From assembly GCA_965637545.1 (NCBI GenBank), contig OZ281500.1, forward strand, positions 12,586,001 to 12,650,000: 64,000 bases of DNA, read 5' to 3'. Of this stretch, positions 3,076-63,342 are shown one piece after another. The notes below the pieces were generated by a model that was not told the origin of the DNA, did not search any database, and was given only the letters and a program-made list of their open reading frames with translations. The stretch's first letter is position 1. Each line of letters opens with the position of its first letter. Position numbers and translations under genes: made by a program. This DNA comes from Phallusia mammillata. Taxonomy: Eukaryota.

Positions 3076-4462
3076 TGTAGACTCTGAACGGCCGACCTGC
3101 AAGGCTGAGCCTCACAAAGGGGTTTTTTCACGTTGAAACACGCCCCGCCCTTTCCCACACAAATCACACTTCCCGAATCTCGTGTAATAATCCACAGCGA
3201 CAACAGCGGCAACAACCACAACGTCGTACACAATCAGGAACGGACAGAAACAAGAATGAGAACGGAAACGGGAACGGAGACGGGAACGGTTTTCTAAACA
3301 AGAAAACGAAACACATTGACATATGTCAACGCACAAAAATGCCAATGTCTAACTTACAAACTATTTTGCGACACAGGTCAACAGGTACAGTTCACGTATC
3401 AACAGTTGCAAGACGATGAAACAATCGCTGCAATGACTATAGGAAAATACAGCATGCCATAAGTTACACATAAACGCCATGAATTAATTTAGGTCACAAG
3501 TCAAATTAAACACTCACCGACAATCACGGTAAACAGGCTTCACTTGAAGATTAATTAGTCAGTCGTCACAATATTTAATATAGCCTTAGTCGTCTCTAAA
3601 AATGTAACACAAACGAATTTACTTAATGCAGTTATAAATCACCTTGCTCGACCACGTTGTACAGTAAATGAATCAATCATTGCAACCAGGGTTGCCAGGT
3701 ACTGTCGGCTGGATTCGGACAGTATTTGTCTGAAAATCGGACATTTTAGGACAAAAAAAACGAGAGCGTAAAATTGCTAACAAGGTATCAATATCGAGGT
3801 GCCATCTGCCATTTTTTGTGCGTTTACGTTCCCCAAAGTGACGGACGTAAAATATGACGTCACTTATGCGTGCAACCACTAGAACTGAAATCCAAACTTG
3901 AAGCCCAACAAACGTCCTATGTTTGAAATAATATTTAGTTGGCAATTGCAACACGTTGCTGTAGTGTTTATCATTGGTTTCGCACCGTTTAAAAAATGTT
4001 TCGTCAACTTGTTGCTTCATATCACCTTAGATAACCATTTGTTACAATACAATTGCTTTGTACACAACAATGGTCATTCACTAGCAGACAATTATGTATT
4101 TAATGTCATAAACAAGGTACTAACCAAAACAAGTTGTACTTTTAAACCACGTTTTGTCGTAAAAAAGGGTTTGCAACCTTCAAAAAATAGGAAGGAGACA
4201 AAAAGTTATTCAATCAGCAAAATTCGGACATATTAGGACAAAAAACTAAACGTCCTAATGATTTTTACGCGTCGGACACAGCATGTGGAATTAGGCCAAT
4301 TTATCGTTTTTTGTCCGATTTTTAGGCCACCTGGCAACCCTGATTGCAACATACAGACAATAGCCTTCCAATTTTACTGTTACGCACATGGCGATTGTAA
4401 CGTCATAGCAGGGGAATAATGAGACAAGTTAATCATGCGTATCTGAACGTGGACATGTAACA
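3076..4462 (-). repeat. 5' LTR of BEL family 1 (about 720 bp without the MITE)
   Basis: TGTTACA start at 4462. The inner end is inferred at ...TCTACA (3076) because the following leader resembles that of family 2. The partner LTR is outside the window, so the inner boundary is unconfirmed. Confidence 0.6.
3687..4342. mobile_element. hAT-type MITE inserted in BEL1 LTR
   Basis: Perfect 14-bp TIR CAGGGTTGCCAGGT; 8-bp TSD ATTGCAAC (3679-3686, 4343-4350). Confidence 0.93.
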
Positions 4463-13019: not shown

Positions 13020-13709
13020 TGTAACGTCAGGAATTTGCGCGCCTGGTACCGCGCTGGCGTCACACTAGAGAAGTCCAATTTCTGGAAACGCGTGAATTTA
13101 TTTTACACTTCGACGCGGTTCAATAGGACACGGTAATCACGTCACGTTCACCGTAGACACGACACGACACGATAGACACGTTCAAGATAATCACGGTTTT
13201 CTGCAAAGAGAACATTCACTCAAAAATGCGAAACAGAAATTAAATTTATACCGGCAGAAATAAAGCTTACCAGAGTTTTGGACCAGGGTATCAAAGATAA
13301 ACACAGTTTGATATCACCAGAAAGTGTTCTACACAGATAAAAAACGTAGACTTTTAATATACGGTTAATTGCGATAAGACAACTTTAATGCAAATCAAGC
13401 TTACCTTGCAAAGGCAACATTAATCCTTTTCGTCAGAGTTTTTAAGTTTATAAAGCATTACCATCTATTAATGACAAACAAATTATAATTAGTCACTTTC
13501 ATTACTTTATCTAACGTTTGCAAATTAAAGTCAGCAACTAACAAACTACACGTGGTCCAAACTAAACTCGATACTAAATGGCCAAAAGCACAGCATAGAG
13601 AAATAAACTACAATGATATTGTTACGTCATAGGGGATTCTGGCATTGTGGTGCAATCACACCATATAAGATGTGACGTAGGTTACGGTTGAGTGATTTAC
13701 GATGTTACA
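13020..13709 (-). repeat. 5' LTR of BEL2 (690 bp)
   Basis: Near-identical to 4468-5142; contains AATAAA on the sense strand; followed by the gag leader. Confidence 0.97.
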
Positions 13710-14214: not shown

Positions 14215-15515
14215 TCCCCAAAGTTTGTCCGACTCGTTTTTCCATCAAATCCTTGATGGATTTGGATGAAACTTACACAGATGGTAGATGTAGTTATGTA
14301 GATGTGCATCCCACTTTGTTTTTGTTGATAACCCCAGTATTTACCCCGCTAGACCTCTAAAATAGGTATTTTTTCCCCGAAGTTTGTCCGACTCGTTTTT
14401 CCATCAAATGTTTGATGGATTTGGGTGAAATTTAAACAGATGGTAGATGTAGTTATGTAGATGTGCATCCCTCTTTGTTTTTGTTGATAACCCCAGCAAG
14501 GGCGTCCGCACATAGGGGCAAATGGGGTCAGCTGACCCCCCCTGGAAAATTTTTGGATGAAAAATGAAAAAGCGAGAACATGCAAAAATAGGCAATTTTC
14601 TGAAAGAGGGAGGAGTAAAGGTGATACGAGTGATGGCTGGCTGGTCAAGCTCTCCGATTGTGATCATCACCCTTTTCGGGAGTATCCCACCCTCTATTAA
14701 TTTACGAAGATACCTACAAGCTACCCGTAATCGCAAAATTTGACAACTTGAGCTCCTGTACCCTCAGAACCACATTACTAGTGTGGGCACTGGCTTTATC
14801 TCACATAAATCTGAAGAAGGATAATTCACAGTTTCAGATAAAATCTATAAAATCATTATCCAATAACCTATCAACGCGACGTTCCGGATATTTCACTTTG
14901 TTGATGAACTCGTTAGCGTCCTCCTGAGCATGACAATGCCAAGCACTACTAACATGGTTTCGAGCAGAGTTATGGAAATTTATACTTTATACATGGAGCA
15001 CTGGTGAATGCGCCAGTTGTGTCACGATGAATAGGCTGCCGAAAGAGCACACACAATTTGCACATGCGCCCTCTTAGGAGAGGAGAATACGCTGGCCACC
15101 GAAAGGGCAGAGTGAACCCTCCTTGACCCTCACTAACCGAAAACCTGCGGACGCCCTTGAACCCCAGTATTTACCCCGCTAGCCCCCTAAAATGGGTATT
15201 TTCCCCCGAAGTTTGTCCGACTCGTTTTTCTATCGAATGTTTGATGGATTTGGCTGAAATTTACGCAGGTGGTTGATGTAGTTATGTAGATGTGCATGCC
15301 ACTTTGTTTTTGTTGATAACCCCAGTATTTACCCCGCTAGCCCCCTAAAATGGTTTTTCCCCCCAAAGTTTGTCTGACTTGTTTTGCCATCAAATGATTG
15401 ATGGATGTGGCTGAAACTTATACAGATGGTAGATATAGTTATGTAGATGTGCATCCCAATTTGTTTGTCCGGATAACCTTAGTATTTACTCCGCTAGCCC
15501 CCTAAAAGGGGTGAG
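14215..15515. repeat. ~158-bp minisatellite, about 4 units, interrupted by a MITE
   Basis: Unit starts (CCCC(A/G)AAGTTTGTC) recur near 14216, 14375, 15204 and 15361. Confidence 0.9.
14497..15159. mobile_element. hAT-type MITE/deletion derivative
   Basis: Perfect TIR CAAGGGCGTCCGCA; TSD AACCCCAG (14489-14496, 15160-15167). Confidence 0.93.
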
Positions 15516-56074: not shown

Positions 56075-57055
56075 GATTTTCTGTATTTAGGAACACTACA
56101 TGCAACTAAACATTACTACACACTCAAGTTGAAACCTGTAAATAAAAGTCAGGAGTCAACTTGAAGTCTAATAAGTTAAACTGTTTCTTCTATAAAAAAA
56201 TAGCAAACCATAGTAAAAAACAGTTTGTGATGGTCATTTGTCAAAGAATAAACATAATTATAAAATTAAAACGAATAAAAAAATTAAATTACCACATAGC
56301 ATACAATATTTAAAATTATGTCCTGAAAACTGCACTATATGAGAAAGTATTGGAAAAACACAGCCATTAGGCCCATTACAATACATTTTATGTGTTAATA
56401 GCTCTAAAATAAAGAACCTAATATTTTTACAAAGAAGGACTAACACACCTCGTCGTTAGGACAATTAGTGGTAAATTTACAACCTGATTTTGTTCGAACA
56501 TTTTAGAGATGTGAATTCTACAAGTTTTTGAAAAGTGATTCAACTTTGTACCTGTACAACAACCAAAAACCAACAAAAATTCCCTACAAATACATTCAAA
56601 CTAAACTAGCTGCACCGACAGCACCAATTATCCATAGGTGGACCTGTCCTAGACCATAATTGCACATGCACATTCACTGATATCCACCATCTTATCTTAT
56701 GTGTGCAAAGTACGACACGGTCTGTTGCACATAAATCAAATTTGTTTACGCTTGAGTGCACACTATAAAGTGGAGCAAATATTTTGTGCTCTATGCTTCC
56801 ATGTACTTGAAGGCTTACTAAACGTCAAATAATGTTTTAAATTTCGAAAAACCGATTTTTATACTATTTGAGATACCACCACTCAAATCTGCATGTTTTG
56901 CTTGCAAATAGTCGATGCCAAAAATGTTCAGACGGATTTACAATTATGGTAACTATTTTATTTAATACTTGAGGCTTTCAGTTAGCTAAATATTAATTTA
57001 ATAATATATTTAATTTGTATCCAAACAAAAAAATCATTTTGGACATCACTGTAGA

Positions 57056-57932
57056 TGTTACATCGCCTTGTACATATGTTTATGTTTTCTGTGTTTCCCG
57101 CCAGTAGCCTTGATTCGTGTGTATGACGCAGTGTTGTGCAACCTGATACATTGTCTGGCACACTATCGGTGATTGTGATGTCACAACTTTGACATTGTTT
57201 ATTGGTAACACGTCTTGTAAGCAAGACCGCCTCGTGTTTATTAGTGACTGGAACTTACAGCGTCTGCATGCGTTTTTTAACTGGTCATTTATGTTTGTTT
57301 TTTGTGTAACAAACAGGAAAATTATGCTGTTTAGAAACTGAATCGTCCAATGTGTGACTTGTATATTTAGTGATCGGTAAGCATATGTTTAAACCTTGTT
57401 GTGACCTTTTGGATTTGAATTTATATGAAACCTGTATTCAGACGTGAATTCCGCCGTCGTCCAACCCCGTGTTATTCTGAACCGAACTGTGTTATTCCGG
57501 TAAGATTATTGTTGCTTAAGTTTGCCGTCAGTCACTAGTGTGATTAAGTGATGTTTATATGTGATGTTATTAGATGCTGTGTTTACAGACCTTCTACTGA
57601 TCGCTTGCATTTAAACGACTCCAGTCCTTTAATAGTTTGGTAAGCGTAAATGTCATTGAAATTCTCCTTCTGTTGCCTTGTCTTAATTTGAACATTTTTT
57701 GTAGAAACCGCCTTTTGACCCCTTGTACTCGCCGTGCTGCCATACTCTCGAGCGCCATCTTTCGGCTATATTGTAAAATAAAAGAGTTCGTTATATAGCT
57801 GCTGGCGTCTTGGAGTTTGAGCGCAAGGAAAGGCGCGTTAAAGACAATTTTAGGAACACAAGCGATCGCCCCTGTTGTGCTGTCTGGAGGCGCATGGAGT
57901 CACGCCTTCCGATAATTAAAGACAGCGCAACA
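57056..57932 (+). repeat. 5' LTR of BEL3
   Basis: TGTTACA...CAACA; AATAAA near 57777. Confidence 0.97.
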
Positions 57933-57975
57933 TCGTTTGAAACTTCTGGACACTTGAACACCCACGGCTTGTTGA

Positions 57976-60267
57976 TTGACGTCAAGCATGGAAAACTTCA
58001 CAATGGAAACTGACAAAGGCGCCATTCCTGCGCCTGAGTCACATGACTCACTCTCCACTGTCGAAATCACTGACAAAGACAAAATTTCCAGTTATACATA
58101 CGCTTGGCAACAAGCTTGTTTGCGAGTTGAAGAATTAATGCTAAAAACCGAAAATGTCACCCTCGTAAGGGAGTTTGTTCTAGTGATTGAAAGAACCTTC
58201 AGCGATCTTGTCGCCGCGTATGCCCCCTTTGAGGAAGGTAACGAAGCCATGTCTCAAGCACGACGGGCATGCCAACAGGATAAACGTGAACTGGATTCCC
58301 GTGTACAGGAATGGTTCGTAAACGTCGAGAAATCCATGGGTCGCCACGAAACTCGATCGAGTTACATGTCCAGCTCCCATTTCGGTTCGGCAAGTACTCG
58401 CACGTCTGGTTCGACGGAAAGTTGCCGAAAAGCTGCCAGGGTACGGATGCGCGTAGCTCGCTTGTCGCGACAGCAACTCGATGAAGATGTCGCCTTAGAA
58501 ACCCAACAAGCTGACATGCAAGCCGCTTTCGCTAAGCAGCAAGCCGCTTTCGAAAAGCAGCAGGCCGCCATCGATGCCAAACGAAGAATAAAAAATAGGG
58601 ACAATGAAGTCGCGTTGGCCGAAGCCGAGTTCCTTGCTTGGGACGAAGAGTTGGAGAACGAAGGTAGACCGGTCGTGCACCAACCACAGATTAATGACTT
58701 GTCGCCACCGGTTGCATCACTTGGCAATTGTTCCAGGGAGCCCGTATATTCTCCACCACGTTCATCCGCTGGGGCCCAGACTCCGACAAATCCCGTAAAA
58801 ATGTCACGCCCGCAAATTTCGAAAATGGATATAAAGCCTATACTTGCTCCTGCTGTTGTTCCACCTGTCGAAGGGTCGCGTACCGATTCCGACTCCTATC
58901 CTCTATACATGTACAAACCGCGTGCTTCTTCCCCGCCTCGATGTGCTCCCAACACCGATTTCGTTCAACAACAAATAGTCCTGCCTCAGCCGGCCATCAA
59001 GAAGTTCGACGGCGACCCGTTGAACTACTGGTCGTTTGTTCGAGCCATTGAGTCGCATGTTCATCGCAGAACAAAATCCGAAGAATCGCGACTAGTTTGC
59101 TTGCTTCAATACTGTGAAGATTCTGTTGCTGACAAGCTCGAAATCTACAGCAAGGATGCAGTCTCTGGTTACTCAAAGGCGCGTTCCCGACTGTATTATG
59201 ATTACGGTCAACCACATATTGTTGCCAATGCTTGCGAACGCCGGTTAAAGCTTTTTCCGCCCGTTAGACAAGGTCGACCAAAGGAACTTAAGGATTTTTC
59301 TGACTTGCTTGAAAAATGCCGTAGTTCTCTGGAAGACAGCCAAGAGTTCGCAAGTTTAAACTCACTAGATACGTTGAAGCAACTCATCCGGAAACTTCCA
59401 TTTCAGCATCGAGAGAGATGGGTGGAACACTCTTTCCAGGTGCTTGAGGAAACCGGGAGACAAGCTGGATACCTTGCGTTTACAAGTTTCGTTGTGCGGT
59501 GCGCCCGTGTTGTCAATTCACTGTTTGGGTCCGAAGCGGTCTACGAAGTCGTGCGCGAAAAAACGCCAATCGAGCCAAAACGGAGTTCAAGAGCCGCTAC
59601 GTACAACGTCTCATCATCGAAGTTTAACAGGGCACGTTCTGACACACCGCCTGTTCCCGCTCCGTGTTGTGTCTGTTGTAAACTGTCACATGATTTGTCA
59701 ACGTGCCCGGACTTCGACAAAATGACCTTACAAAAACGTCGCGAGGTTGTAACCTCTAATGGCCTTTGTTTTAAATGTCTTTGTTCAGGGCATCGTTGCG
59801 GAAATTGTCCCTGTCGAGAATCGTGCTCCGTTGAGGGTTGCATTAGCACCTTTCATCATACGAAGCTGCATGGTGCATTTCAAAGGAAACAGGTCGTCGG
59901 AAATGATGAGAACCCTGTCATGGAAACGACTACCCAAACGGTTTCTAGTATGAAGGCGTCCACCAGTAACTGCGGAGTCTACCTCAACGTCGTGCCGGTG
60001 AAAGTCAGACATAACGGTATCGAGGTAAATACGTATGCCTTCCTGGATCAAGGCTCTACTTCGACATTTTGCGAACAACGACTAATTGACAAACTCGGCC
60101 TACAGTGTAAGGGTCGAAAAATATGCTTAAGCACGCTTACCGATCAATCTCGAGTGTATCAAGGTTCCACGATCTCTTTCACTGTTACTCCGCTTGGTGG
60201 AGGAAAGCCTCTGGTCCTTAACGAAGTCCTGTCTATTGATAAAATTCCTGTATCGCCCGCGACTTGA
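57976..60267 (+). CDS. BEL3 gag-protease ORF (763 aa), truncated by deletion of RT
   Basis: FDGDPLNYWSF, three CCHC-type knuckles, AFLDQGSTSTF; ends at the deletion junction near 60255. Confidence 0.9.
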   Translation: MTSSMENFTMETDKGAIPAPESHDSLSTVEITDKDKISSYTYAWQQACLRVEELMLKTENVTLVREFVLVIERTFSDLVAAYAPFEEGNEAMSQARRACQQDKRELDSRVQEWFVNVEKSMGRHETRSSYMSSSHFGSASTRTSGSTESCRKAARVRMRVARLSRQQLDEDVALETQQADMQAAFAKQQAAFEKQQAAIDAKRRIKNRDNEVALAEAEFLAWDEELENEGRPVVHQPQINDLSPPVASLGNCSREPVYSPPRSSAGAQTPTNPVKMSRPQISKMDIKPILAPAVVPPVEGSRTDSDSYPLYMYKPRASSPPRCAPNTDFVQQQIVLPQPAIKKFDGDPLNYWSFVRAIESHVHRRTKSEESRLVCLLQYCEDSVADKLEIYSKDAVSGYSKARSRLYYDYGQPHIVANACERRLKLFPPVRQGRPKELKDFSDLLEKCRSSLEDSQEFASLNSLDTLKQLIRKLPFQHRERWVEHSFQVLEETGRQAGYLAFTSFVVRCARVVNSLFGSEAVYEVVREKTPIEPKRSSRAATYNVSSSKFNRARSDTPPVPAPCCVCCKLSHDLSTCPDFDKMTLQKRREVVTSNGLCFKCLCSGHRCGNCPCRESCSVEGCISTFHHTKLHGAFQRKQVVGNDENPVMETTTQTVSSMKASTSNCGVYLNVVPVKVRHNGIEVNTYAFLDQGSTSTFCEQRLIDKLGLQCKGRKICLSTLTDQSRVYQGSTISFTVTPLGGGKPLVLNEVLSIDKIPVSPAT

Positions 60268-62095
60268 ATTGACCGCCGCTGTGCTTGCTGCAAAACTTGA
60301 TCGCTTGATGAGAAAGGAACTGGACTTGCCAATTACCCGTTCAACCTTCTGGAGTGATTCCACTGCTGTTTTACATAGCATCCGTAATGCTACGAAACGT
60401 TTTCCTGTGTTTATAGCCAACCGTTTGGCCGAGATAGAGAGGTTGACTGACGTTTCTCGCTGGAGGTACGTTCCAACTAAAGAAAACCCTGCAGACGATG
60501 CTTCCAGAGGATTACCTGCCACATCTTTCGTCGGGTCACGTCGCTGGTTAAAAGGGCCGTCGTTCCTTTTGGAGTCGGAAGAAAATTGGCCTGTGCAATC
60601 AGTGCCAACCCCTGAAGTTCCCGCAGAATTTAAGCCTCTTATCGAAAGGACTGCTGGGTCTTTTGCAGTCGATGTTTCAAGATCGACTTTTTCTGTTGAT
60701 CGCATTGTCGAGCATTACTCAAATCTGCATCGGCTAAAGAAAGCAGTGGCTTGGTTGATCAGATTTAAGACTTATCTGAGTCCTGGGATAAGACAGTCAA
60801 TCAAACGCACTGCTCTTGATGTGTGTGAACTTGAAAATGCTGAATTGGAACTTGTCAAGTATGTGCAACGGAAACACTTCGGCTCACTGCTATCGTCTTT
60901 GACTCAACGAGGCTGTCCGAAAAGGTCCGATTGCAGTTCCGCAGTGTACAAGCTAAACCCTATCCTCAAAGATCAACTCATCCTGGTTTAGCGCACACTT
61001 GGACATCTATTAGAAAAAAATACTGGATTGCAAAGGGGGGCGTTGCTGTTCGTCGCGTTCTCGGAAGATGTTTGCCCTGTCGTCGTCGCAGTGCTAGACC
61101 AGGACAGCAAATGATGGCTGATCTACCACCGGCCCGTCTTGGTGTTGCTGAACCTCCGTTTTCAAATGTCGGAATTGATTATTTTGGACCATTTGGTGAA
61201 ACAAGGGCGCAGTGAAATTAAACGGTACGACTGCATATTCACTTGTCTTACAATCCGTGCTGTACACTTGGAAGTCGCCCACAGTTTGTCTACCGATTCG
61301 TTTATTGCTGCTCTTCGTCGTTTCATCGGGCGCCGTGGAGCACCCGTTCACGTCTACAGCGATAACGGTACAAACTTTGTTGGCGCAGAGCGCATCCTGC
61401 GAGAGTCACTACGAGACTGGAACCAGTGTCAAATTACTGAATTTCTCCACCAGAAAGGAACGTCATGGATTTTCAATCCCCCTGCTGCGAGCCACATGGA
61501 TGGTGCATGGGAACGGATGATACGGTCTGTTCGCCGAATCCTGTCTTCAATTACGTCCTCCCAAGTGATGACCGACGAAGCTTTGGAGACATTGCTTGTG
61601 GAAGCTGAGGCTATAATCAATTCTAGACCCCTGATACCTGTTAGGTTTGATCACAGGGATGAAGAACCGCTGGACCCGAATCATCTGTTGCTGATGAGAG
61701 GTTCCCCGAATATGCCACCGACAATTACCGATGCGAAGGACTGCTACACAAGACGTCGTTGGCGGCAAGTACAGTTTCTAGCCGACCAGTTCTGGCGCCG
61801 ATTTGTGCAGGAGTACTTGCCCGCCGTTGCTACTCGTTCCAAATGGCACGAGAGCCAGCCGAACTTTGAGAAGGACGACATCGTTCTACTGGTTGACGAT
61901 TCAAAATGCCGTTCAAGGTGGTTGGTTGGACGCGTTGTCCGAACTTATCCCGACGAATCTCAAAAGGTACGCACTGTGCTCGTACGGACGAGCGGTGGTG
62001 TGCTCCAACGGCCGATCGCCAAGCTTTGCCGCATCGTTGATTCTGACGAGAGCTTAACACCGACCTCGCCGAGCATTCGCAGCTCGGACTGCTAG
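60255..62095 (+). pseudogene. BEL3 RNase H C-terminus and integrase, frameshifted
   Basis: RLELTAAV..FWSDS..NPADDASRG; truncated zinc-finger region (HPGLAHT..CLPC); GIDYFGP then a frameshift; SDNGTNFVG, WERMIRSV, EAEAIINSRPL, DUF5641-like C-terminus. Confidence 0.9.
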
Positions 62096-62228
62096 ATGGA
62101 AGCCAAATTGAGTTTTCATAACAATAACTGTCCGACAAGAAATCATCGCCTCATTGCGATGCACGCGCGATTGGCGATGTTGTGTTTGAAAAAAATGTGT
62201 CACGTTGCTCCCACATTTTGGGTGGGAG

Positions 62229-63105
62229 TGTTACATCGCCTTGTACATATGTTTATGTTTTCTGTGTTTCCCGCCAGTAGCCTTGATTCGTGTGTATGAC
62301 GCAGTGTTGTGCAACCTGATACATTGTCTGGCACACTATCGGTGATTGTGATGTCACAACTTTGACATTGTTTATTGGTAACACGTCTTGTAAGCAAGAC
62401 CGCCTCGTGTTTATTAGTGACTGGAACTTACAGCGTCTGCATGCGTTTTTTAACTGGTCATTTATGTTTGTTTTTTGTGTAACAAACAGGAAAATTATGC
62501 TGTTTAGAAACTGAATCGTCCAATGTGTGACTTGTATATTTAGTGATCGGTAAGCATATGTTTAAACCTTGTTGTGACCTTTTGGATTTGAATTTATATG
62601 AAACCTGTATTCAGACGTGAATTCCGCCGTCGTCCAACCCCGTGTTATTCTGAACCGAACTGTGTTATTCCGGTAAGATTATTGTTGCTTAAGTTTGCCG
62701 TCAGTCACTAGTGTGATTAAGTGATGTTTATATGTGATGTTATTAGATGCTGTGTTTACAGACCTTCTACTGATCGCTTGCATTTAAACGACTCCAGTCC
62801 TTTAATAGTTTGGTAAGCGTAAATGTCATTGAAATTCTCCTTCTGTTGCCTTGTCTTAATTTGAACATTTTTTGTAGAAACCGCCTTTTGACCCCTTGTA
62901 CTCGCCGTGCTGCCATACTCTCGAGCGCCATCTTTCGGCTATATTGTAAAATAAAAGAGTTCGTTATATAGCTGCTGGCGTCTTGGAGTTTGAGCGCAAG
63001 GAAAGGCGCGTTAAAGACAATTTTAGGAACACAAGCGATCGCCCCTGTTGTGCTGTCTGGAGGCGCATGGAGTCACGCCTTCCGATAATTAAAGACAGCG
63101 CAACA
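62229..63105 (+). repeat. 3' LTR of BEL3
   Basis: Apparently identical to 57056-57932. Confidence 0.97.
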
Positions 63106-63342
63106 GTAGATAACCATGATGTACCTTTCGAAAACAACAACAGCAAGGTGGTGCGCACGCAATTTTTCATCCAGACTGCAAGACTGCTTGCAATTTGCCA
63201 AACTAACAACATAGGGGCAGAGACGCATAGTGCAGACTGCACACAGCAGACTGGACACTTGCAGAATGCTTTATTGCCCAAGCGCTTAAATTTTTGTCCA
63301 TTGCTAGGATCACACGCATAAAATAATTTAGTTGGGCTACAG

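Follow-up and report, generated by a model that had tools for sequence, protein, structure and literature searches.

A trans-splice acceptor and three small introns inside the LTR of a BEL/Pao retrotransposon in Phallusia mammillata

Retroelements are copied through RNA and are expected to lose their introns. The locus described here lies in a 64,000-nucleotide stretch of the ascidian Phallusia mammillata genome (contig OZ281500.1, positions 12,586,001 to 12,650,000, forward strand; the window). It raises the question of whether introns apparently contained in the long terminal repeat (LTR) of a retrotransposon are removed from its RNA, and how such introns could persist in an element that copies itself in this way.

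The element and its LTR introns

BEL3 is an LTR retrotransposon of BEL/Pao type that occupies 57056-63105 on the plus strand. Its main parts are given below; X1 is one of the sequencing runs introduced in the next section, and BEL2 is a related element elsewhere in the window.

57051..57055, plus strand: target-site duplication GTAGA, 5' copy, read from the sequence (3' copy at 63106-63110)
57056..57932, plus strand: 5' LTR, 877 bp, TGTTACA...GCAACA, 100% identical to 62229-63105
57933..57987, plus strand: leader past the LTR (primer-binding-site position), up to the gag ATG at 57988, read from the sequence
57988..62095, plus strand: internal region with gag (DUF1759), a Pao protease remnant and an integrase (rve and DUF5641), from a Pfam scan and tblastx against BEL2
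62220..62228, plus strand: polypurine tract GGGTGGGAG, directly 5' of the 3' LTR and read by an X1 loose end before 57056
62229..63105, plus strand: 3' LTR, with introns at 62550-62614, 62673-62761 and 62813-62877 and AATAAA at 62950-62955

We placed BEL3 in BEL/Pao because its internal ORFs match DUF1759, weakly (E 3.6e-4), a remnant of the Pao-type protease Peptidase_A17 (22.2 bits against a cut-off of 22.3), and an integrase with rve and DUF5641 domains. The criterion of a BEL-specific integrase tail was met by DUF5641, with an E value of 1.3e-26 in the Pfam scan of the ORFs, while the rve match was weaker (E 1e-5, below the Pfam cut-off); the LTR criterion was met by direct LTRs with TG..CA ends and the 5-bp GTAGA on both sides. 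The criterion of a reverse transcriptase (RT) and RNase H was not met by the window copy, from which that region is deleted (~1.7-1.8 kb, by tblastx against BEL2 and by Pfam). Sister BEL3 copies have an LTR spacing of ~6995 bp, against 5173 in the window copy, and this difference, together with the RT/RNase H deletion, leads us to regard the window copy as a non-autonomous deletion derivative of a BEL/Pao family, and a very young one. Criteria for a Penelope-like element (GIY-YIG endonuclease, telomerase-like RT and pLTRs) were not met, the Pfam scan giving integrase and Pao-type domains, and the resemblance of BEL3 to that group is only functional.

Within the 5' LTR, the exons and introns of the processed leader, downstream of a spliced-leader (SL) acceptor, are arranged as follows.

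57297..57316, plus strand: SL trans-splicing acceptor, a T-rich tract and AG (57315-57316), from one X5 contig
57317..57376, plus strand: exon 1 of the processed leader, 60 nt, from the SL junction (X5) to donor 1 (X1 joint), with two short uORF ATGs
57377..57441, plus strand: intron 1, 65 nt, GTAAGC..TTCAG, from X1 and X8 joints
57442..57499, plus strand: exon 2, 58 nt, ATG-free, from X1 junctions
57500..57588, plus strand: intron 2, 89 nt, GTAAGA..TACAG, from X1 joints; an alternative acceptor after 57573 gives a 74-nt form
57589..57639, plus strand: exon 3, 51 nt, ATG-free, from X1 junctions
57640..57704, plus strand: intron 3, 65 nt, GTAAGC..TGTAG, from reciprocal X1 loose ends
57705..57932, plus strand: last LTR exon, starting AAACCG, with AATAAA at 57777-57782 and one conserved uATG at 57894

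An earlier note had claimed these three introns and the two exons between them, with the same coordinates and lengths, upstream of AATAAA and repeated in the 3' LTR at an offset of +5173; all of this held exactly, the two identical LTRs being separated by that distance. The criterion for U2-type introns was met, with three G|GTAAG donors and pyrimidine-rich YAG acceptors (TTCAG, TACAG and TGTAG). Three sense-strand GGTAAG motifs in an 877-nt LTR are not a chance outcome, because a count of three never arose in 5000 dinucleotide shuffles and the motif is missing from the antisense strand of the LTR. The introns are also of host size, because the gaps between successive exon matches of host chaperonin genes are ~52-113 nt. 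From the last acceptor to AATAAA the distance is 73 nt in BEL3 and 98 nt in BEL2. Farther downstream, the U5 ATG at 57894, kept in 34 of 35 BEL3 LTR copies, opens a uORF of ~41 codons (57894-58019) that is out of frame with gag and overlaps its start.

Cis- and trans-splicing in RNA

The RNA evidence consists of assembled contigs of four public runs (X1, X5, X8 and X15), for which the run type ('RNA?') was guessed. From such contigs neither the start nor the end of a transcript can be read, nor the linkage of features within single molecules; and because the LTR sequence also appears in transcripts as 3' UTR, junctions cannot be assigned to the 5' rather than the 3' LTR. The X1 contigs that contain LTR sequence link to the BEL3 internal region and not to genomic flanks, and one of them (record 7, spanning 57816-58129) crosses the LTR end.

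We detected junctions for all three introns in X1. One contig joins 57376 to 57442 (listed as 57375 to 57441; 65 nt skipped, GT..AG, depth 16.3, shorter side 59 nt), and depth inside intron 1 is zero in this run with both flanks covered; the same joint occurs at low depth in X8, which comes from a separate study. For intron 2, a contig joins 57499 to 57589 (listed as 57498 to 57588; 89 nt skipped, GT..AG, depth 17.2), and a second joint, 57498 to 57573 (74 nt skipped, GT..AG, depth 9.25), marks the alternative acceptor. The intron 3 join, 57639 to 57705, is not a listed joint and rests on two reciprocal loose ends, one behind 57639 that continues with AAACCGCCTTTTGACCC, equal to 57705-57721, and one before 57704 that carries CTTTAATAGTTT, equal to 57627-57638. 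Junction reads, the first check that the earlier note had proposed, are positive in this contig form for every intron. Splicing of introns 2 and 3 is only partial, since further X1 contigs still contain intron 2 and a portion of intron 3.

We searched the 240 Mb genome for copies and junctions and found no DNA joining exon 2 to exon 3, exon 3 to exon 4 or exon 2 to exon 4; the alternative-acceptor join of intron 2 (57573) was likewise nowhere in the genome's DNA. The joins for introns 2 and 3 thus arise in RNA. Some DNA copies do lack intron 1, and all of these differ from the window copy at 4-16 positions within 57236-57375, whereas the X1 contig that spans this junction matches the window copy over the same interval without a single mismatch; the intron 1 junction is therefore also an RNA-level event. 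We conclude that the host spliceosome removes all three BEL3 introns, intron 2 with an alternative acceptor, on the evidence of contigs whose run type was guessed.

A rival explanation is that the junction contigs are DNA deletion variants carried by the sequenced animals. In its favour, the run types were guessed and LTRs without intron 1 do exist as DNA. Against it, four separate deletions would be needed, all ending at GT..AG and two with a common donor; no intron 2 or intron 3 form exists in the assembly; the intron 1 junction contig matches a young intron-bearing subfamily rather than the intron-less copies; X1 lacks any intron 1 sequence though most DNA copies have that intron; and X15, a deep and probably DNA run, has no GT..AG joint. 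Adding that a template-switch tail and a spliced leader mark X5 as cDNA, we consider this explanation very unlikely. An X5 variant that skips 87 nt at 57643-57731 has GC..TC ends and is an LTR deletion allele, not a splice.

The SL acceptor rests on a single contig of X5, of 261 nt, which starts with TACGGG and ATTCTATTTGAATA and then follows the window from 57315 (AG GAAAATTATGC...). Its 5' end reads as the end of a template-switch oligo followed by a 16-nt SL, joined as acaaacAG|G (57316|57317), 60 nt upstream of donor 1. Because it carries both the template-switch tail and the SL, X5 is taken as cDNA. The 16-mer is this genome's own SL and is equal to the 16-nt spliced leader of the ascidian Ciona, ATTCTATTTGAATAAG (PMC1488885); followed by GT, it has 3179 exact genomic matches, against 0 for the control, partly in arrays with a 553-bp period. 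Tandem arrays of this period at C3:11108338-11147465 presumably represent an SL RNA gene cluster. The junction of SL and exon 1 was not found in genome DNA, and the acceptor AG with its T-rich tract is kept in 34 of 35 BEL3 LTR copies. The criterion for an SL trans-splicing acceptor in the BEL3 LTR, a junction with the host's leader at an acceptor AG, is met, on one contig in one run. That contig continues without splicing across intron 1 and into intron 2, so there is also leader-capped RNA with introns still in place. BEL3 shares with host mRNA trans-splicing the identical 16-nt leader (PMC1488885) and an AG after a T-rich tract, and differs in that its acceptor sits in a retrotransposon LTR, a location for which we found no report in the literature searched (an incomplete search, and weak evidence of novelty). 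The motif GGAAAATTATGC, first taken as a TATA-like box, was dropped as such, as the SL junction makes it the first bases of exon 1.

Intron retention, related families and ATG avoidance

At least 46 BEL3 LTR matches were found in the genome, with 87-100% identity, and over 90% of the copies keep all introns. Intron 1 is precisely missing from five LTR copies; the boundary is ambiguous by one G, in agreement with GT..AG. Four of these copies have both flanks in common and go back to a single solo LTR, with target duplication ACAGT, which afterwards underwent segmental duplication on C5, and the fifth, on C3, is a separate solo LTR with target duplication GTTGT. The four occurrences of the former, with flanks, lie within 170 kb (C5:1274150, 1341934, 1428768 and 1439731), which looks like segmental duplication. 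Midpoint rooting alone cannot separate loss of intron 1 from gain; we prefer loss because the RNA junction has identical boundaries. As the two integrations are independent, RNA without intron 1 has been reverse-transcribed and integrated at least twice. No BEL3 DNA copy in the genome lacks intron 2, intron 3 or both.

A parsimony test over BEL3 copies showed no excess conservation of GT/AG (P 0.44) or of extended splice sites (P 0.42), with low power owing to post-insertion decay and few sites. Changes per site were about twofold higher in the interiors of introns 2 and 3 (0.59-0.61) than in exons 2 and 3 (0.24-0.31). In the largest BEL3 subfamily the main intron 2 acceptor is AC and the alternative AG at 57572-57573 is kept; in the basal subfamily the alternative is lost and the main acceptor kept. 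All BEL3 copies but one hold at least one of the two.

Two further BEL families in the window, BEL1 and BEL2, have the same kind of LTR.

13709-13020, minus strand: BEL2 LTR, with introns at 13404-13329 (76 nt) and 13270-13201 (70 nt) and a 58-nt exon between them
13200, minus strand: start of the BEL2 last exon, AAAACCG, with AATAAA near 13102
4463-3076, minus strand: BEL1 LTR, with GT..AG segments at 3642-3596, 3517-3437 and 3357-3294
3293, minus strand: start of the BEL1 last exon, AAAACCG

The introns of these two families rest on sequence evidence only, with no RNA evidence, and no intron is missing from any of the top 40 BEL1 and top 40 BEL2 matches. The earlier note had claimed that three independent families share the layout and that the last exon starts AAA(A)CCG in each, which held (AAAACCG in BEL1 and BEL2, AAACCG at 57705 in BEL3). 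No alignment among the LTRs of the three families was possible, and their proteins are only 30-55% identical. Candidate SL acceptors, known from sequence alone, lie 70 nt before the first donor in BEL1 (GTAACAG|TAAAATT) and 60 nt before it in BEL2 (ATTAATAG|A). Between BEL2 subfamilies, 23-25 of 64 interior positions of intron 1 differ (23/64 is 36%), compared with 0 of 32 splice-site positions, 4-15 of 299 positions in U3 and 3-10 of 54 in exon 2, and GT/AG is kept in 30-31 of 31 copies.

From the shared layout the earlier note had inferred a conserved, clade-level design, for which it predicted that copies would keep splice sites fixed while intron interiors drift. This held in part. BEL2 shows the predicted pattern, with invariant splice sites and a drifting interior, and ATG-free exons occur in all three families; the part that did not hold concerns BEL3, where the GT/AG dinucleotides show no measurable excess of conservation over other LTR positions (P about 0.44) and the pattern is not significant.

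Some observations on these LTRs stand apart. The window BEL1 LTR is broken by a 656-bp insertion at 3686-4342 with inverted ends GGTTGCCAGG / CCTGGCAACC; it is missing from ~39 other BEL1 LTR copies, raised 1194 first-look candidates when included in the query, and is probably a high-copy MITE. An 11-mer around the poly(A) signal, TGTAAAATAAA, is common to BEL3 (57772-57782) and BEL2 (13108-13098, minus strand).

These comparisons bear on a second rival, that splicing does occur but without serving any function for the element, the sites being tolerated or cryptic and splicing a host by-product that is perhaps costly. Three points speak for it: BEL3 GT/AG is no more conserved than other LTR positions, the main intron 2 acceptor has been lost in the most numerous subfamily, and a lineage that lacks intron 1 was nonetheless able to integrate on at least two occasions. 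Against it, three LTRs that cannot be aligned share their layout, last-exon start and ATG-free exons; BEL2 keeps all four splice sites while the interior of its intron has diverged by 36%; and the loss of the main intron 2 acceptor is matched by a kept alternative. We regard an absence of function as unlikely.

The exons themselves suggest what the introns may be for. We counted ATGs over 711 nt of internal LTR exon sequence in BEL1, BEL2 and BEL3, starting at exon 2 and stopping at the poly(A) signal or LTR end, and detected none, against 11.2 expected; a count of zero did not arise in any of 20000 shuffles. Every other one of the 64 trinucleotides is present in these exons, which hold AT 37 times and TG 73 times. 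The introns of the same families have 14 ATGs in 557 nt (Fisher P 9e-6 against the internal exons). In BEL3, splicing reduces the ATGs between 57317 and the gag ATG at 57988 from 10 to 3; its leader is not fully AUG-free, in that exon 1 has two ATGs and the alternative intron 2 acceptor adds one. AUG avoidance characterises 5' leaders that are scanned; promoters and 3' UTRs do not show it. From the ATG-free internal exons together with the SL acceptor, we infer a transcription start upstream of 57316 and a long R region that contains the introns.

A third rival accepts the introns as real and has them act only in the 3' LTR (U3 and 3' UTR), with transcription from the 5' LTR starting downstream of intron 3, for example at the TATATTGTAAAATAAAAG or TTATATAGC motifs. 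On this view, the 3' splice site that precedes AATAAA by 73 nt would mark out a terminal exon, and only polyadenylation in the 3' LTR would be favoured by it. In support, one contig of X1 passes without a break from the internal region through the polypurine tract into U3, and coverage of exon 1 extends from 57236, so that the 3' LTR may be the source of much of the signal; BEL3 and BEL2, which both have TGTAAAATAAA, place AATAAA at similar distances from the last acceptor (73 and 98 nt, respectively); and the transcription start is unmapped. Against it, a 3' UTR has no reason to shun ATG, yet there are 0 in 711 nt across three families; the SL acceptor, which precedes donor 1, puts a capped 5' end ahead of the introns; and X1 contigs (records 6 and 7) read from exon 4 past AATAAA through U5 into gag. 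This reading is less likely but remains possible.

A processed-leader model and known systems

We lean, by a modest margin, towards a model in which the LTR encodes a multi-exon 5' leader and the processed RNA serves as mRNA while the unprocessed RNA is the replication template; this functional split is inferred, as no start has been mapped and there are no packaging or translation data. Past the promoter, the BEL3 LTR would supply the SL acceptor (57316|57317), four short exons and three U2-type GT-AG introns, followed by the poly(A) signal. RNA that is both trans- and cis-spliced would be the mRNA translated into Gag and the downstream proteins. Splicing would serve to cut the upstream AUGs before gag, from 10 to 3, with the internal exons held AUG-free. 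The unprocessed, intron-retaining transcript would be the template for reverse transcription, and the retention of all introns by over 90% of copies would follow from that choice of template, which is also an inference. SL-capped RNA would give minus-strand strong-stop DNA with a 3' end unable to pair with the 3' LTR; this fits with the absence of an SL-exon 1 junction in DNA. The same layout is found in related BEL/Pao families of this genome.

The nearest analogue is HIV-2/SIV, in which a 140-nt 5' UTR intron lies in the R-U5 leader and its removal raises Gag translation ~5-fold (PMC3315320, citing Lodmell and colleagues). There too a complete intron in the repeated leader can be removed from Gag-encoding RNA, and the unspliced RNA is the genome. 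HIV-2/SIV differs in being a vertebrate lentivirus with one intron that acts by destabilising TAR, whereas the BEL families are found in a tunicate and have two or three tandem mini-introns plus an SL acceptor, with an effect, the removal of upstream AUGs, that is proposed and untested. Penelope-like elements (PLEs) are the next-nearest analogue, with a 5' UTR intron in the terminal repeat that is retained through retrotransposition. The Penelope pLTR contains the transcription start and a 75-bp 5' UTR intron that is kept in genomic copies (PMC8557442, citing Arkhipova et al. 2003 and Schostak et al. 2008), and PLEs have been called highly unusual among retroelements for retaining introns through retrotransposition (PMC8557442). 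PLEs differ in their telomerase-like RT, GIY-YIG nuclease, target-primed copying and pseudo-LTRs; BEL3, in contrast, is a true LTR element with an integrase (rve and DUF5641), TG..CA ends and a 5-bp target duplication, and must therefore keep its introns by reverse-transcribing unspliced RNA.

Host splicing also makes distinct RNA pools from one provirus in the case of env mRNAs, the gag RNAs of copia, BARE and EVD, and the Ogre intron. In those cases the donor or the whole intron is internal and splicing alters coding content, whereas every BEL3 intron is complete within the LTR and its removal changes only the untranslated leader. In the literature searched, which was incomplete and gives only weak evidence of novelty, we saw no LTR retrotransposon described as having tandem introns within its LTRs. 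True LTR retrotransposons of several diverged families appear to keep two or three introns and a trans-splice acceptor in the LTR, with working introns shown in BEL3, and the rare intron-less copies are a record of the expected failures. These families offer a natural system for studying how an LTR element sorts its RNA into translated and copied pools, and both the annotation of tunicate LTRs (U3, R and U5) and expression counts of transposable elements must allow for splicing within the LTR.

A bolder reading, which we hold to be less likely than not, is that ascidian BEL/Pao elements as a group have built a host-type processed leader into the LTR. The SL acceptor and the two or three mini-introns would form a molecular switch, such that fully processed RNA, with most upstream AUGs gone, would be translated and unprocessed RNA would be the sole efficient replication template, and the junction at the last exon would belong to the signals for replication. 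Just past the BEL2 5' LTR (13019-12950, minus strand), the leader contains the 12-mer GTTTTCAGAGTT twice, at the primer-binding-site position, and this 12-mer is the exact complement (12 of 12 nt) of the spliced junction of the last BEL2 intron, AACTCTG|AAAAC (13278-13195), a match equalled by ~0.15% of shuffles. The sequence that it pairs with exists only after the last intron has been spliced. Pairing of the last junction with the leader was not above background in BEL3 or BEL1. Elsewhere in the window, a 155-nt repeat occurs four times at 14216-15515, in two adjacent pairs, with 81-90% identity.
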